A DNA stretch of 64,000 bases from Scyliorhinus canicula (lineage: Eukaryota): assembly GCF_902713615.1 (NCBI RefSeq), contig NC_052152.1, positions 41,453,810-41,517,809 on the forward strand, read 5' to 3'. Both the position numbers and the translations under genes were made by a program. Positions 31,438-62,961 of this stretch are shown piece by piece (the stretch's first letter is position 1; the number at the start of each line of letters is the position of its first letter). The notes under the pieces are model-generated. The model did not search any database, had not been told where the DNA came from, and saw only the letters and a program-made list of their open reading frames with translations.

Positions 31438-33260
31438 TAGAAACCACCTGACCGACAGAGTTGTCACTGAGCAAATATTTGGGATATTGAAGAAGTAAAC
31501 AGTGGTGAAGAAGAAACACTATCGCTCACTCCATAGTGGCCACCTTAGATTATGACACTGTGAGCCAGATGACCACCATTGAGGAGGGAAGCAACAGTTG
31601 ACAAAATTCCCAACTTTCCCCTTTCCTTCAAAAAGGCTGCCTTCCACCATATTTTCATTTTGGAAGGTGGTGGTATGGGGTTGGACCTCTGGAGGCAGTT
31701 CGGAGGTCATTTGGGATGTTGTCCATATTTTAAAAGTCTGTTGGACCCTCTACCACTCACACCTCCTCACCCAAATGCCCACTCCCTATTCCATTTCCAG
31801 GCCTACCATGCCACCTCTAAATCCAGATAGCGAGACATCTATTTCTCCACATGACCTTCTATGAATGTTTGGCTGAGCTCCAAACCCCACCAATGGATTA
31901 GTTTAACAGGAGGTCTGTTTTCTCAGGTGGAAGTGGAGAGTTTGCTTTGGTTGATTGACATCTTTCAGTCATCGTTTCTTTCAATGCCTATTTTTATTTG
32001 GACATGATTAAAAGGTGTGAAGCGAGGTTAAGCTTCCATTTTTGAAACTGTAATGGCCATTGAGTGACACATTTATAGCATTGTAAGAGCATCAATCTTT
32101 TTCAAACCCTATTTCTGAGTGATTTTTAAGTGGATTTCAAGACTTGCGATTGTTATTGTGTGGCGCACTGTTTCAACAGTGCATACCGCGTGGGTGCATA
32201 TGGAAAGTGCAGGAGATCCATGGAATGGGCAATAGAAAGGTACGGAGAGCATGGAAGGCATGAAGGGGGTATGGGAGACATGGTAGGGGCACGGTGGTCA
32301 TAGATAGGACCGTTTGAACATACCTTTCAATAGTTTCCTGAATAAAGACAATGGTTAATGAATTTGTGAAGGGATCATGAACTACATATCCTTCACAGGC
32401 TGGCCCCACACCACAAGACTTAAGGGGGCTGTGGGTATATGAGATGCAAACCCCATATAGGAGCTGGCCACCATGGAAGCCTGCACCCTTATTCCACAAC
32501 AGTGAAATTTCCATATCGAGAATGGGGGTGGGAATCCCAGAATCAAATTAATTTCACCAACCATATTTAAAGGCCTCCAAAGTCAGCCCAACTCTGTGAA
32601 AATATGACCCTGTGTGCACTTCAGAGGACAGCTTGGAGAGGTAGGAGACCGTGGGCATAAGTGACCTGCAGCCAGGGCAGGGTGCAAGGGTCACACAGTA
32701 TCCAGCTCTCCAGGGGGTGAGATCAGGCATGAGTTCTCCTGCAGATAACTTAGATGGGATGGCATACAGAAGAAGCCACATAATGAAGTCCACGTAATGA
32801 AATTCTTGGTGAGGGCAGACCTGTCAAAGCCTATGTCAAGGAGTCTGTAGGATTCAGGCATGAAGGATTCCAGCAGAGAGCTTTGTGCGGAGCTTCAAGG
32901 AGCTTGACTTCCCCAGATTCCCCCGACTCTAAAACCTTTGAAGAGCTAGTAAAAATAGTAAAGGGGCATTATCAACTGAATCCCTTGATAATCATGCAGA
33001 GATACAAGTTCAACTCAACTGCAAGAGCCCCTGGGGAAGTGATAGCAGCTTCCACGGTGAGATTGAGGCACACAGCTGAACATTGTAAATTTGAGCCTGC
33101 CCGTAATGATATGTTGGAAGACTGTCTAGTGTGTTGGATAAATAATGCCGTCATTCACAAAAAACTGCTAGCAGAGGCAGAAATAATCCTAAAGAAGGCA
33201 CTTGAAATTGCCCTTGCCATGGAAATTGCAGAAAAGACCGTGATGGAGCTTCAAGGCAAT

Positions 33261-33526
33261 GCATGTCAGCGAGATCCGCCAAGGCATGCATGTCAGCGAG
33301 ATCCGCCAAGGCATGCATGTCAGCGAGATCCGCCAAGGCATGCATGTCAGCGAGATCCGCCAAGGTATGCATGTCAGCGAGGTCCGCCAAGGCATGCATG
33401 TCAGCGAGATCCGACAAAGCATGCATGTCAGCGAGGTCCGCCAAGGTATGCATGTCAGCGAGATCCGCCAAGGCATGCATGTCAGCGAGGTCCGCCAAGG
33501 CATGCATGTCAGCGAGATCCGCCAAG
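33261..33526 (+). repeat. 27-bp in-frame tandem repeat inside gag, ~9.8 copies
   Basis: Unit GCATGTCAGCGAGATCCGCCAAGGCAT, encoding (ACQRDPPRH)n. Confidence 0.95.
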
Positions 33527-33590
33527 TTTGGAGAGAAGCTGCTAATGGCAGCAGTGCCAAGGGCACAGAGTTTGGTGAGGAAAAAAAATG

Positions 33591-33761
33591 CTGAGCCTGA
33601 GAGCCTGAGAGCCTGAGAGCCTGAGCCTGAGCCTGAGCCTGAGAGCCTGAGCCTGAGAGCCTGAGCCTGAGCCTGAGCCTGAGAGCCTGAGAGCCTGAGC
33701 CTGAGAGCCTGAGAGCCTGAGCCTGAGAGCCTGAGCCTGAGAGCCTGAGCCTGAGCCTGAA

Positions 33762-35569: not shown

Positions 35570-36036
35570 AGCCTGAGCCTGAGCCTGAGCCTGAGAGCCT
35601 GAGCCTGAGAGCCTGAGAGCCTGAGAGCCTGAGCCTGAGCCTGAGCCTGAGAGCCTGAGCCTGAGCCTGAGCCTGAGAGCCTGAGCCTGAGAGCCTGAGC
35701 CTGAGAGCCTGAGCCTGAGAGCCTGAGCCTGANNNNNNNNNNNNNNNNNNNNNNNNNNNNNNNNNNNNNNNNNNNNNNNNNNNNNNNNNNNNNNNNNNNN
35801 NNNNNNNNNNNNNNNNNNNNNNNNNNNNNNNNNNNNNNNNNNNNNNNNNNNNNNNNNNNNNNNNNNNNNNNNNNNNNNNNNNNNNNNNNNNNNNGAGCCT
35901 GAGCCTGAGCCTGAGAGCCTGAGCCTGAGAGCCTGAGCCTGAGCCTGAGAGCCTGAGCCTGAGCCTGGGCCTGAGAGCCTGAGCCTGAGCCTGAGAGCCT
36001 GAGCCTGAGCCTGAGAGCCTGAGCCTGAGAGCCTGA

Positions 36037-36087
<51 letters not shown>

Positions 36088-36508
36088 AGCCTGAGAGCCT
36101 GAGCCTGAGCCTGAGAGCCTGAGCCTGAGAGCCTGAGCCTGAGCCTGAGCCTGAGGGCCTGAGCCTGAGAGCCTGAGCCTGAGAGCCTGAGCCTGAGAGC
36201 CTGAGCCTGAGAGCCTGAGCCTGAGCCTGAGCCTGAGAGCCTGAGCCTGAGAGCCTGAGCCTGAGAGCCTGAGCCTGANNNNNNNNNNNNNNNNNNNNNN
36301 NNNNNNNNNNNNNNNNNNNNNNNNNNNNNNNNNNNNNNNNNNNNNNNNNNNNNNNNNNNNNNNNNNNNNNNNNNNNNNNNNNNNNNNNNNNNNNNNNNNN
36401 NNNNNNNNNNNNNNNNNNNNNNNNNNNNNNNNNNGAGCCTGAGCCTGAGCCTGAGAGCCTGAGCCTGAGAGCCTGAGCCTGAGCCTGAGAGCCTGAGCCT
36501 GAGCCTGA

Positions 36509-36541
<33 letters not shown>

Positions 36542-36587
36542 AGCCTGAGCCTGAGAGCCTGAGCCTGAGAGCCTGAGAGCCTGAGAG
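33591..36587 (+). repeat. Compound GAGCCT/GAGAGCCT satellite (at least 3 kb) with assembly gaps
   Basis: Directly visible. N runs at 35733-35894 and 36279-36433. Confidence 0.98.
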
Positions 36588-37167
36588 AGTGCAGAGGGAA
36601 AAGAGATTCAACCAACAAACTAAGATTTGTGAAGAGTGCTCTGGGAATGGGGGGAAACCACCGCCAGGAGGAGTATATGTTCAAGGAAGCTGTGTCTATT
36701 GCCTACAGCAGAAAAGAACATATAAGAAGAAAATGTGGGGTCAAGCAGGGCTAACCTGGTGCTGCAGGGTCAAGATTCTGGCTCCAGTGAACAGTAAGGA
36801 AAGTAGTTCTGGAGGGGACAAAATCTATATGAGTTGAATAATATTAAAGTGGGAAAATTAGCCCCTATCTCAATAATTAGCCCCTATCTCATCTTGGTTC
36901 AGTGAAGACATGCAACTGCATCTTTCAGAGGAGAAAATCTGCAATCTGCCATGGCTCTAAATGTTAGGTGGAACAGGCCTCAATGACCTGGATCGCGGAT
37001 GGAACTGACCTGTCTGACTGTTGAATGGACAACTATCCTTCTTTCCCAATGAGGGTGCTGGCGGTTATACTGTTCAATCTCCCCGTGGGTTTGGCTGTCT
37101 GTATCTCTTATATTCCTTGCCTTTGGAATTTTTCATTTGCATACCCCACTGATCTCTGGTAAACAAG

Positions 37168-51246: not shown

Positions 51247-52083
51247 CATATATTTCAAGCTGTGACACAAATGATTGATAGTTAATTCTGTAGTGGTCCA
51301 TTTTGGATCTAAAAGGGATACATCTAAATATCCCTTAAATGGTGAAAAGCTAGGTTGCTGGAGTTCCAAAGTGATTTAAGGTTCATGCACACCAATCACT
51401 AAAATGGCGTGGTCAGGTGCAAAGATTAATCAAAAAGGTGAATGGAGTTTTGGCGTAGAGAGTTGAATATAAAAGAGGAGGACGATTAGCCACAGCAATA
51501 CAAAATCCTGGTTGGAGCACCAGATGTGGAATACAGTTGAGATGGAGAGGATGAGAAGTCACTCATTGTATTTTTAACAGATAGGTTTGCAGACCACAAA
51601 GGTACAAACAAACACAAGCTTTATTGGAAAGGTGATTTCTCACAGGCTGTTTAGGTTAGACTGCCCACGCAAACAGCCGATTAAGTCATCAACATGTCAC
51701 GTGATCCAACTTTTTAAAAGAATGATATTTACTGAGGTTTTATATTTTAACAGACAACGCAACAAAACCACAGGAATGTACAGCACCCCAAGAAAAAGTA
51801 AAGTCTCAATATGCATGATTACAGAGGGAACCAGAACAGCAGTACAATCATTAGACGTAACTTTATACCTCTAAAAGCCCCAGCAGAGAAGAAGGAAGAG
51901 ACAGGAAAAAGCCATGAATACATAGTAAAATGGTGCATGCCTTCCCATGTGACGATTGCTCGCAATTACCACACGAGTGCACAATACATTTTTCACATCA
52001 TGTTCAGGAGCGCACTAAGACACATCTCTCGTGACTACAGCAGCACCAGAGACACCAATGACACACCGTCACCTCCTTCCCTT

Positions 52084-59155: not shown

Positions 59156-59169
59156 GGCATCTTTATTTT

Positions 59170-59230
59170 AAGCACCACAAGTTCCTTTCAGACAGGAAGG
59201 CTGATGTCAAAGGAACCCACAGCACTCCGC
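59170..59230 (+). promoter_or_regulatory. Candidate proximal promoter motifs (RUNX ACCACA, ETS CAGGAAG)
   Basis: ACCACA at 59174-59179 and CAGGAAG at 59193-59199, about 150-170 bp upstream of the leader ATG. Short motifs only. Confidence 0.3.
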
Positions 59231-59345
59231 TTTACCTTTTTAAGATAACACAATTGCACGCCCTCCCCACCTACAACATCAGAGGTGTTGTATCCCTGTT
59301 CCAGAACTGAACTTGAATTTGGCAATTCAACTGATGCTGGGAAAA

Positions 59346-59400
59346 ATGTCTTCATTCATTCATTGTTTTACCAAGTGGATTCTCCTCATGGTTGCTCTAG
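59346..59400 (+). CDS. Exon 1 (signal peptide) of a V-C1-TM Ig-superfamily receptor
   Basis: ATG...MSSFIHCFTKWILLMVAL, then G|GTAAGG donor (phase 1). In-frame upstream ATG at 59334. Splices in frame to 60441. Confidence 0.75.
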
Positions 59401-60440
59401 GTAAGGATACGTTTTAGTGATAATGTTAGTGAAGTTGAGAGATGAGTCTTTGTAATATTGTTTGAAGTTCCTGCTGCATACTGATTGTTATCTTGTCATC
59501 ACTGAAGCTGCTAACTTGCAAGGTTTAGCTTTTGGTCAAGGACTCGGATAGCTTGAATATCGTATTCTTTTCATAGTTATCCAAATTGTTTGAAAAGTAA
59601 TTCTATCAATTTCACTTCCAACTATCTATGGTGTTTTCCCTGTCATTTTAACGAAAAGTCGATTAAAATTCAAAAAAATTTTATTTTAAACCCTGCCACT
59701 CTGTGGTATTGTGAACGTATCCTCAAAGTTAGCAAGGCAGTAAGTGCTTTTGATGCGGGTACTTCCATCCCTTTACGTGCATTTAAACTCTTCTGCGCAA
59801 CAATGCATCATTACAATTTTATTGTATTGGTGAGTAGGCTGTCGAGGACACTTAGAGACATATGCTGACCAATAGACGCATTGATATGAGTATTCGAGCA
59901 GGACCATGAAGGCATTTTGTACTGGTCGATGTTGGAATGTGAGAAATATCCTCATCTGTTGTTTTGCTGACAATGATCTCAATGGTGCACTCTCAAACTA
60001 TCTGATTTAATTGGAAAAACACGAAACTGTCATTGAATCAGACACGGATATTAGAAACCTCTTGTGACAAAGCATATTGATATTAAAAAGCTCTTGGTCT
60101 TTCAAGCAGATATTTTGAACCGCTCCCTGCAATTAACTTGTGTTATTAAAGTAAACAACGACATGTTTTTCCATGACAGACTTTTAATTGCACCGCTGAC
60201 CGGGGTTTCATACCACGATTGCATTCTTCCCTAGAATCAAATCTTGACTAAAAGCGAAAGAAAAGTGAAGACAACTTATGCTGATCTTCAGAATCCATGT
60301 CACGCCTTGTCCATTAAGGACTACCATTTCAATCTTAATTTTAAAGCCCTGGCTTTGAATAAATAAGCAGATTCACAGAGAGATGTTCAAAAGGTTTTTA
60401 ACTACCAATGCTAATTTATTTTGATTTTTCATGGGAACAG

Positions 60441-60812
60441 TTTTGACACATAGTGAAGACGAAGTTTTCCAAACTCCGGCTGTTCTCCGAGCATTCAAGG
60501 GAGAAAGCGCCACCTTCACTTCTCCCTACTGGTCCCATCACTCTCAGGTAGAATCGATGTTTGTGTCCTGGTGGCGAGATATGCGGAAAGAGCCTGTGTG
60601 TGGATTACATTATATGAACAAAACGTTTACACCAAGACCTGGGTGTGATGGCCGAATGACTGTTACTTTGCAGCTCAATTCTGTGGTTACTAACTTTACC
60701 ATTCAAGATCTCCAGCTGAACGACACAGATCATTATTACTATATCATTCAATTTTCTGTGCCACCACCGACCAAAAGCATACATGGAAACAAAACAAGCC
60801 TCATTGTAGAAG
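60441..60812 (+). CDS. Exon 2: VJ-type Ig V-set domain (CD28/NKp30/TMIGD2-like) lacking the canonical Cys pair
   Basis: Acceptor GGAACAG|TT, donor GAAG|GTATGA. Reads VLTHSEDEVFQTPAVLRAFKGESATFTSPY...VSWWRD...GRMTV...FTIQDLQLNDTDHYYYIIQFSVPPPTKSIHGNKTSLIVE. Confidence 0.92.
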
Positions 60813-61042
60813 GTATGATTTAATATCTTAAATATGCCTATAAAAATACAATAAATCAATATGCTGTTGCGTTGATCACGTAAATCTGTTGGATTTCACC
60901 TGGTCACAGATGTCTTTGTAAAGAAATTTCTTGAGGTTATTATCCACTTCAAAACCAACATCTACGTCTGTGTGTTACACAATCAACGTGGAGCATTAAG
61001 TTGGGAGAACAACATCACTATATGCACAATGTTTTTCTTTTT

Positions 61043-61271
61043 CTTTTTTTAATATAAATTTAGTGTACCCAATTAATTTTTTCCAATTAAGGGGCAATTT
61101 AGCGTGGCCAGTCCACCTATCCTGCACATCTTTGGGTTGTGGGGACAAAACCCACGCAAACACGGGGAGAGTGTGCAAACTCCACACGGATAGTGACCCA
61201 GAGTCGGGATCGAATCTGGGGTCTCAGCGCCGTGAGGCAGCAGTGCTAAACACTGCACCACCGTGCTGCCC
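61043..61271 (-). mobile_element. Short V-SINE variant in intron 2
   Basis: Reverse complement of the 11217 family. Confidence 0.88.
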
Positions 61272-61350: not shown

Positions 61351-61659
61351 CTCCTCCAGAAGTGGATGTTGAATTTCTTGCCTGGCCTGAAAATGGGTGC
61401 TGTATACAACTGGTCTGCAGAGCTGTGAACTTCTACCCTGCCAACGTCCAACTGAGGTGGAATAAGGAAGGAAAAGAAGGCTCAGTGTGGATTCAGTCCG
61501 CTATTACTATTACCTCAAACAACAGCAATCTCAGTACATGTTATGTTAATCTCTCTCAATGGGAGAACGGGGATGTATATGCATGTCATGTGAATCACTC
61601 GACGTTGCAAACCCCTCTCGTGAGGAATCTCACAATAGCATTTGATGAACCACATGAAG
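61351..61659 (+). CDS. Exon 3: Ig C1-set domain
   Basis: Acceptor TTCCCCAAG|CT, donor GAAG|GTATTT. C1 signatures LVCRAVNFYPANVQLRW and YACHVNHSTLQTPL. Confidence 0.93.
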
Positions 61660-61952: not shown

Positions 61953-62175
61953 GTTTTTAAAAATAAATTTAGAGCATCCATTTTTTTTTCAATTAAGGAG
62001 CAATTTAGTGTGCCCAATCCACCTAACCTGCTCATCTTTGTGTTGTGGAGGTGAAACCCACGCAGACACGGGGAGAATGTGCAAACTCCACACAGACAGT
62101 GACCCGGGTCTGGGATCGAACCCGGGTCCTCAGTGCCGTAGTCCCAGTGCCAACCTCTGTGCCACGTGCCGCCCC
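61953..62175 (-). mobile_element. Short V-SINE variant in intron 3
   Basis: Reverse complement of the 11217 family. Confidence 0.85.
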
Positions 62176-62871: not shown

Positions 62872-62961
62872 ATAGTGTATATATATGGGTGGTGGTCGCT
62901 TCTGTGTGTGTAATTCTAGTAACTGGGGTTGTCTATTTACTAATAAAGTGTTCAAGAAAAG
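62872..62961 (+). CDS. Exon 4: transmembrane segment and start of cytoplasmic tail
   Basis: Acceptor TTTTTATTGCAG|AT, donor AAAAG|GTAAGA. DSVYIWVVVASVCVILVTGVVYLLIKCSRK: hydrophobic stretch followed by a basic stop-transfer. Confidence 0.9.

Follow-up and report, generated by a model that had tools for sequence, protein, structure and literature searches.

Apparent Stepwise Loss of the Core Disulfide in a CD28-Type V Domain Joined to a C1 Domain in Catsharks

A receptor gene of the catshark Scyliorhinus canicula encodes a V-set domain from which both canonical cysteines, those of strands B and F, are missing; serine and tyrosine stand in their places. These cysteines are usual, but not obligatory, for the V-set fold, and the evidence taken as a whole is best explained by a functional, folded V domain, a reading that we regard as probable. 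Comparison of orthologs indicates that the core disulfide was lost stepwise, with tens to hundreds of millions of years between the two events. The gene lies in a stretch of 64,000 nucleotides, here called the window, whose initial annotation had drawn attention to the two missing cysteines and to two others in the same domain.

The exon translations match the S. canicula RefSeq protein XP_038657154.1 (P0039, 405 aa), in which a leader is followed by V, C1, transmembrane (TM), and tail segments. The RefSeq name of this entry, ‘class I histocompatibility antigen, Gogo-A*0201 alpha chain-like’, is an automatic misnomer; the receptor is best explained as a type I membrane protein encoded by a working gene. 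Its exons in the window are the following:

59334–59402, + strand: leader exon, split leader, phase 1, donor GT at 59403 (sequence reading; tblastn)
60441–60812, + strand: V (VJ-type) exon, CD28-type V-set domain, 372 bases, P0039 residues 23–147
61351–61659, + strand: C1-set exon, phase 1 at both ends (Pfam C1-set, 40.8 bits; matches P0039)
62872–62961, + strand: transmembrane exon (sequence reading; matches P0039 residues 249–279)

The start codon of the leader is at 59334, with a second in-frame ATG at 59346, and P0039 residues 1–22 agree with this exon at 100% identity (tblastn). By sequence reading, the V exon has canonical splice sites (AG acceptor at 60439–60440, GT donor at 60813–60814), and the acceptor of the C1 exon may alternatively lie at 61359/61360. 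The cytoplasmic exons fall beyond the end of the window, the record giving a gene span of 11.3 kb, which is more than the window holds. No paralogs of the receptor gene were found within the 64-kb window. The split leader, the single-exon V with its J-like end (G-N-K-T-S-L-I-V), and the C1 domain are layout features of nonrearranging VJ–C1 antigen-receptor-like genes. A search for a cysteine between the C1 domain and the TM segment and for a YxxxxT motif in the TM exon found neither. The tail, encoded outside the window, carries the YxNx-type tyrosine motifs I-Y-V-N-V and I-Y-E-N-T in P0039 and its orthologs, together with a third motif, S-N-Y-S-F-I in P0039, that is kept in both catsharks (S. 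canicula and S. torazame). At about residues 300–385, P0039 also contains about four tandem units of ~17 residues rich in Asn, Gln, and Arg; this array is reduced to one or two copies in S. torazame, and the three tyrosine motifs that flank it are kept.

The V exon matches the Pfam V-set family PF07686 over the whole profile (26.5 bits vs a cut-off of 26). The positions on which the following argument turns are:

60521–60523, + strand: TCT, Ser50, canonical B-strand Cys position, within A-T-F-T-S-P-Y (sequence reading and alignments)
60569–60571, + strand: TGG, Trp66, C-strand core tryptophan (invariant column in three alignments)
60599–60601, + strand: TGT, Cys76, strand C′, first half of the putative CD28-type second pair (CTLA-4 alignment and model)
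60644–60646, + strand: TGT, Cys91, C″–D loop directly before strand D, second half of the putative pair (CTLA-4 alignment)
60740–60742, + strand: TAT, Tyr123, canonical F-strand Cys position, last Y of D-T-D-H-Y-Y-Y (sequence reading and alignments)
60761–60769, + strand: Pro130-Pro131-Pro132, PPP motif of the FG loop (aligns with the CTLA-4 MYPPPY loop)

Sequence reading confirmed every codon listed in the initial annotation, i.e., Ser and Tyr at the B- and F-strand cysteine positions, the Trp, the D-x-x-x-Y, and the two extra cysteines, whose spacing is C-x14-C. Tyr123 occupies the cysteine position of the canonical D-x-x-x-Y-x-C motif, and TCT and TAT are each a single substitution away from TGT. 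Trp66, Asp117, and Tyr121, which represent the C-strand Trp and the D-x-x-x-Y, are invariant columns in the family alignments. Five residues after the PPP motif, G-N-K stands for the J-like GxG; the second G has been replaced, and an N-x-T sequon has been created.

To find relatives of the receptor, phmmer was run exhaustively against 1.8 billion representatives, and three word-seeded searches were added. Relatives with a V–C1–TM layout were found only in cartilaginous fish (sharks, rays, and chimaeras), and the sole relative outside this group is the sturgeon protein P0022, with one V domain and without C1. The maximum-likelihood (ML) tree is divided into two clades, A and B, each with 100/100 support and each with a member from the elephant shark Callorhinchus; the duplication is therefore older than the chimaera–elasmobranch split. 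Clade A, which includes the catshark gene, is ordered as Callorhinchus, Heptranchias, Heterodontus, and then Carcharodon and Scyliorhinus beside the carpet sharks. Members of clade B keep both canonical cysteines and carry the motif E-I-P-P-P, which has been reported for chondrichthyan CD28H (PMC11599192). The second G of GxG is Lys in most of clade A and is kept in clade B.

The 2024 survey of the CD28 family ascribes a single V domain to all its members (PMC11599192). The catshark gene and all its relatives have a C1-set exon after the V exon and are thus not single-V receptors as the CD28 family was defined there. The V–C1 family is missing from the supplements of that survey (PMC11599192), and a literature search with the accession numbers of its members found no mention. 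We conclude that receptors with a CD28-type V domain joined to C1 form an undescribed family, so far restricted to cartilaginous fish. The initial annotation had stated that no V–C1 receptor with this combination of features was known. The layout itself, a CD28-type V domain followed by C1 and TM, turned out to be family-wide in sharks, rays, and chimaeras, whereas the state without either canonical cysteine did prove specific to catsharks.

Automatic names of family members are wrong or uninformative (‘Ig kappa/lambda light chain-like’, ‘HLA-DM beta-like’, ‘SIRP-like’), and none reflects the CD28-type V domain. The C1 domain shows two cysteine features of its own. A vicinal Cys-Cys just before its strand B (61398–61403 of the window) is conserved in most of clade A, with the variants C-H-C in Stegostoma and C-C-C in Rhincodon, and is missing from clade B. 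The replacement S210C (TGT, 61539–61541) is found in S. canicula only, at a column that is Ser in the 19 other members; this extra cysteine leaves the ectodomain of S. canicula with an odd cysteine number.

The residues found in the alignments at the two canonical positions are given below as B strand / F strand.

Callorhinchus (clade A) and all of clade B: Cys / Cys
Heterodontus and Carcharodon (clade A): Tyr / Cys
Chiloscyllium, Rhincodon, and Stegostoma, carpet sharks (clade A): Phe / Cys
S. canicula and S. torazame (clade A): Ser / Tyr

The Cys/Cys pair in the Callorhinchus ortholog and the clade-B paralogs was read at the columns of Ser50 and Tyr123 in alignments of 16 and 20 members. In the latter, the F-strand column is Cys in all 18 members from outside Scyliorhinus and Tyr in both Scyliorhinus sequences. 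The B-strand series comes without a squalomorph state, the Heptranchias models lacking the N-terminus. The initial annotation had read the two replacements as a paired loss and had proposed aligning orthologs from other sharks to see whether the double loss is shared. The idea of a paired loss is not supported, as the orthologs show two separate events, with Tyr/Cys or Phe/Cys in other sharks and Ser/Tyr only in catsharks. The double loss is shared as far as S. torazame, which has the same Ser and Tyr, but the other sampled sharks keep the F-strand Cys.

The order of clade A is that of the species tree, so Fitch parsimony places the Tyr/Cys state at the galeomorph node. It follows that the Ser codon descends from Tyr and not from TGT. 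In the first step, the B-strand Cys would have been replaced by Tyr (Phe in carpet sharks) before the sampled galeomorph sharks split, which would have left a buried, unpaired F-strand Cys. In the second step, much later and in the Scyliorhinus lineage, this orphan cysteine would have become Tyr while the B-strand Tyr became Ser. The changes in both steps are all single-base. The passage from Tyr/Cys to Ser/Tyr would have moved a bulky aromatic residue from one sheet to the other; the B side of the core would have given up its aromatic side chain and the F side gained one, which suggests a packing swap.

The view of the initial annotation that the gene is functional rather than decaying is upheld by intact open reading frames, conserved tail motifs, and an ordinary branch length. 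Full-length open frames of 340–405 codons with canonical splice sites are found in two species and three assemblies. Both catsharks keep the three tail tyrosine motifs, the PPP loop, Trp66, D117, Y121, and Cys76/Cys91. Branch lengths in the ML tree are 0.31 for Scyliorhinus, 0.20 for Carcharodon, and 0.34 for the carpet sharks. In addition, the 31-mers of the V exon are present at shares of 0.89–0.94 in several small runs from four studies, the run type being guessed as RNA or unstated.

The strongest competitor of a functional, folded domain, although a rather unlikely one, is that the catshark copy is under relaxed constraint or in early decay, the cysteine loss, the strand-B changes, and the new C1 cysteine being drift. 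Consistent with this, the S. canicula and S. torazame proteins show 22 differences, without significant depletion at conserved columns (odds ratio 0.37, p = 0.14), and the V domain diverges about twofold faster between the two catsharks than C1 (13% vs 7%). Furthermore, S. canicula alone has I48F, S51P, and Y54S near Ser50, at otherwise conserved positions; these three and S210C fall at columns at least 83% conserved in all other members, S210 being invariant. For Mustelus, the other carcharhiniform of the protein collection, no clade-A ortholog was found, which would also fit relaxed constraint. However, neutral sequence at the observed divergence should, by a rough estimate, carry a few frameshifts or stops, and the frames and splice sites described above are intact, as are the tail motifs, the PPP loop, the core residues, and the Cys76/Cys91 pair. 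The polarized changes are split evenly between the two catsharks (8 vs 9), and the Scyliorhinus branch does not exceed the carpet shark branch in length. I48F, S51P, Y54S, and the new C1 cysteine could represent either compensation or drift.

A relationship of the V domain to the CD28 family is indicated first by sequence comparison. The best PDB sequence match of the V exon by phmmer is CTLA-4, in a full-length alignment whose E-value is weak (0.02). Both extra cysteines align with the CTLA-4 C′–D pair, annotated as the 85–103 disulfide in UniProt P16410, and the PPP motif aligns with the MYPPPY loop; identity to CTLA-4 is 28–30% in the phmmer and Foldseek matches. A second, C′–D disulfide is annotated in UniProt for CTLA-4, CD28, and ICOS, and the same region of human TMIGD2 contains an additional C-x13-C pair.

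Structure prediction led to the same neighborhood. The AlphaFold2 model of the V domain, built on 15 family sequences (pLDDT 85.5, pTM 0.77; the method is insensitive to single destabilizing changes), places the Ser in strand B, the Trp in C, Cys76 in C′ (within strand 47–54 of the model), Cys91 in the C″–D loop, and the Tyr in F. A V–C1 model (pLDDT 82.9) gives nearly identical strands. When Foldseek was run against Swiss-Prot models, human TMIGD2/CD28H came out on top (TM 0.85, rmsd 1.9 Å), followed by CTLA-4 of five species, CD28, and PD-1; against the PDB, CTLA-4 was ranked first. With a geometry-only aligner all V domains tie, the ESM Atlas feature search returned generic V-set clusters only, and the matches of the family profile in the PDB are mostly multidomain antibodies, which do not help in assigning the family. 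The fold is therefore that of a regular V-set, and the CD28-family assignment comes from sequence-aware methods and motifs, not from shape alone.

Among these motifs, the signature YxC-x6-PPP-x4/5-GxG was described for CTLA4/CD28X by Quiniou et al. in 2024 (PMC11599192). The catshark layout, Y-x-[C to Y]-x6-P-P-P-x5-G-N-K, fits this signature with the PPP intact. The initial annotation had likened the extra cysteine pair to that of CD28H, and the comparison bears this out, TMIGD2/CD28H being the top fold match and CTLA-4, with both cysteines aligned, the top match in sequence and in PDB fold searches. Judged from sequence, this supports the extra pair as the CD28-family second disulfide or, more generally, as the C′–D disulfide of the CD28/CTLA-4 group.

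Cys76 and Cys91 are both present in 19 of the 20 aligned members. The exception is the clade-B protein P0017 of Callorhinchus, in which both are missing and the rest of the domain is kept. Presence together and absence together is the pattern expected of a bonded pair. Since strand C′ belongs to the GFCC′C″ sheet and strand D to the ABED sheet, a Cys76–Cys91 bond would tie the two sheets like the canonical bond, but at the edge. Every lineage with canonical cysteine loss retains the pair. In the catshark domain, the fold would be held by the hydrophobic core (Trp66, Tyr121, and the new Tyr123) together with this second disulfide, which would be the only covalent cross-sheet tie left. A fold relying on the alternative disulfide, as the initial annotation had suggested, is plausible. 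Our reading is that a Cys76–Cys91 bond forms and makes up for the missing one; we likewise presume that the protein is produced and takes part in signaling.

A milder dissent, which we hold to be quite improbable, is that the V domain folds without help from Cys76–Cys91, in the manner of CD2 or CEACAM, and that the pair serves ligand binding, loop shaping, or interchain bonding. The CD2, CD58, and CEACAM N-terminal domains and the ABPC48 VH domain fold without a core disulfide, and the otherwise complete domain of Callorhinchus P0017 does without the pair. This is countered by the retention of the pair in every lineage that lost a canonical cysteine and by its correspondence to an intradomain bond in CTLA-4. 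Such a fold differs from the preferred reading only in the stability contributed by the bond.

An artefact, whether from sequencing or assembly or from a misalignment in which the observed cysteines are the true canonical pair, is highly improbable: the same Ser and Tyr are found in P0041 and P0045 of S. torazame, from two independent assemblies, which rules out a sequencing or assembly slip, the words of the V exon are present in runs of several studies, a 14-residue spacing is too short to reach from strand B to strand F, and the model and three alignments put the cysteines in C′ and before D.

If the receptor is functional and folded in the way proposed here, resemblance to its relatives suggests how it might work. 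If the CD28 family is taken as a guide, a B7-type ligand would be bound by the GFCC′ face of the V domain and its FG-loop prolines, with C1 as a stalk; signaling from the tail would use pYxN motifs of the Grb2/PI3K type and S-x-Y-x-x-I, a motif with the form of an ITIM.

The catshark receptor differs in definite respects from each system it resembles. With TMIGD2/CD28H it shares an FG-loop motif of the x-I-P-P-P kind and the tail motif Y-V-N-V, which skate and shark CD28H have in identical form. Unlike CD28H (human TMIGD2, fish and shark CD28H, and CD28HL1-3), which has a single V domain and keeps the canonical cysteines, it adds a C1 domain and has lost both. The second pair is spaced C-x17-C in CTLA-4, as counted in the alignment, and C-x14-C in the catshark. 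In contrast to CTLA-4, CD28, and ICOS, the catshark receptor has no membrane-proximal Cys for covalent dimers, no YxxxxT, and no canonical disulfide, and it has a C1 domain.

The N-terminal V domains of CD2, CD58, the SLAM family, and CEACAM adopt a V-set fold without the B–F disulfide. They are, like the catshark domain, V-sets of cell-surface immune receptors, but they have no intradomain disulfide and are followed by a C2-type domain, whereas the catshark V domain keeps two cysteines and is followed by C1. Furthermore, the catshark loss can be traced step by step among orthologs. The ABPC48 VH domain, in which the F-strand Cys is replaced by Tyr, was reportedly found to be folded and functional by Proba, Honegger, and Plueckthun in 1997. 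The replacement is the same as that at the F-strand position of the catshark domain. However, ABPC48 is a single antibody, an oddity of somatic or germline origin with its B-strand Cys free, whereas the catshark state is fixed in the genus. The catshark domain is thus new with respect to the known V domains without a core bond in keeping a second cross-sheet pair, in joining a CD28-type V to C1, and in having its intermediates preserved in orthologs.

Two other identities were considered and rejected. PRARP genes are reported by Fu et al. in 2019 to have a single V and no C1, and this identity was dismissed on that account. UrIg and UrIg2 resemble the catshark gene in that the leader is split, the VJ-type V is encoded in one exon, and the constant domain is of the C1 type. 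When the C1 exon was compared with the PDB, the UrIg2 chain was one of its best matches; the 60 PDB matches listed for the V exon do not include UrIg2. UrIg and UrIg2 each contain several C domains, and their V domains are antigen-receptor-like (PMC12227049). The catshark gene has one C1 and a CD28-type V, and an identity with UrIg or UrIg2 was rejected on account of their multiple C domains and different V.

A broader reading can be offered tentatively, with the odds rather against it: cartilaginous fish would possess an ancient, undescribed family that has kept a CD28H-type V domain linked to C1, and lineage A would be a stepwise record of a domain becoming independent of its core disulfide. 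If so, two paralog lineages predate the chimaera–shark split, and lineage B includes paired activating-like and ITIM-bearing forms. As the family lies outside the single-V description of the 2024 survey, it bears on the relation between costimulatory receptors and VJ–C1 antigen-receptor-like genes, which it would link if the CD28 family arose from a VJ–C1 ancestor by loss of C1. The series Cys/Cys, Tyr/Cys, Ser/Tyr would then show a V domain leaning on a peripheral cross-sheet bond.

Ig domains without a core disulfide are known usually as isolated end states. Here, the orthologs hold three stages (both cysteines, one, and none) against a constant, putative second disulfide, so that the series can be used to test how far a peripheral C′–D bond and an aromatic swap replace the canonical bond, which has practical relevance for disulfide-free binders. 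The catshark case is made more interesting by the undescribed family to which the gene belongs.

Clade B offers further observations. Two S. canicula paralogs of this clade, P0047 and P0052, are on the same chromosome record as the receptor gene, outside the window, and share the same C1 sequence but have different V domains and tails. One member of the pair has an Arg in the TM helix and no tyrosine motif, its model running on into apparently unrelated sequence; in the other, an ITIM-form motif, V-I-Y-S-L-L, is present. Mustelus and Carcharodon show this pairing as well. The pair looks like a paired activating/inhibitory receptor set, or like alternative V exons on one C1.

Within the window itself, a ~157-base interspersed repeat occurs as two direct copies, 83% identical, at 61077–61233 in the V–C1 intron and at 61983–62139 in the C1–TM intron. 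Runs of N are found at 35733–35894 (162 bases) and 36279–36434 (156 bases). The N-terminal 290 residues of P0045, a RefSeq model of S. torazame, match the window at 32913–33257, 33496–33609, 36577–36639, 51820–51930, and 59167–59283; this portion looks like a fused upstream retroelement ORF plus translated 5′ leader and not like part of the receptor.
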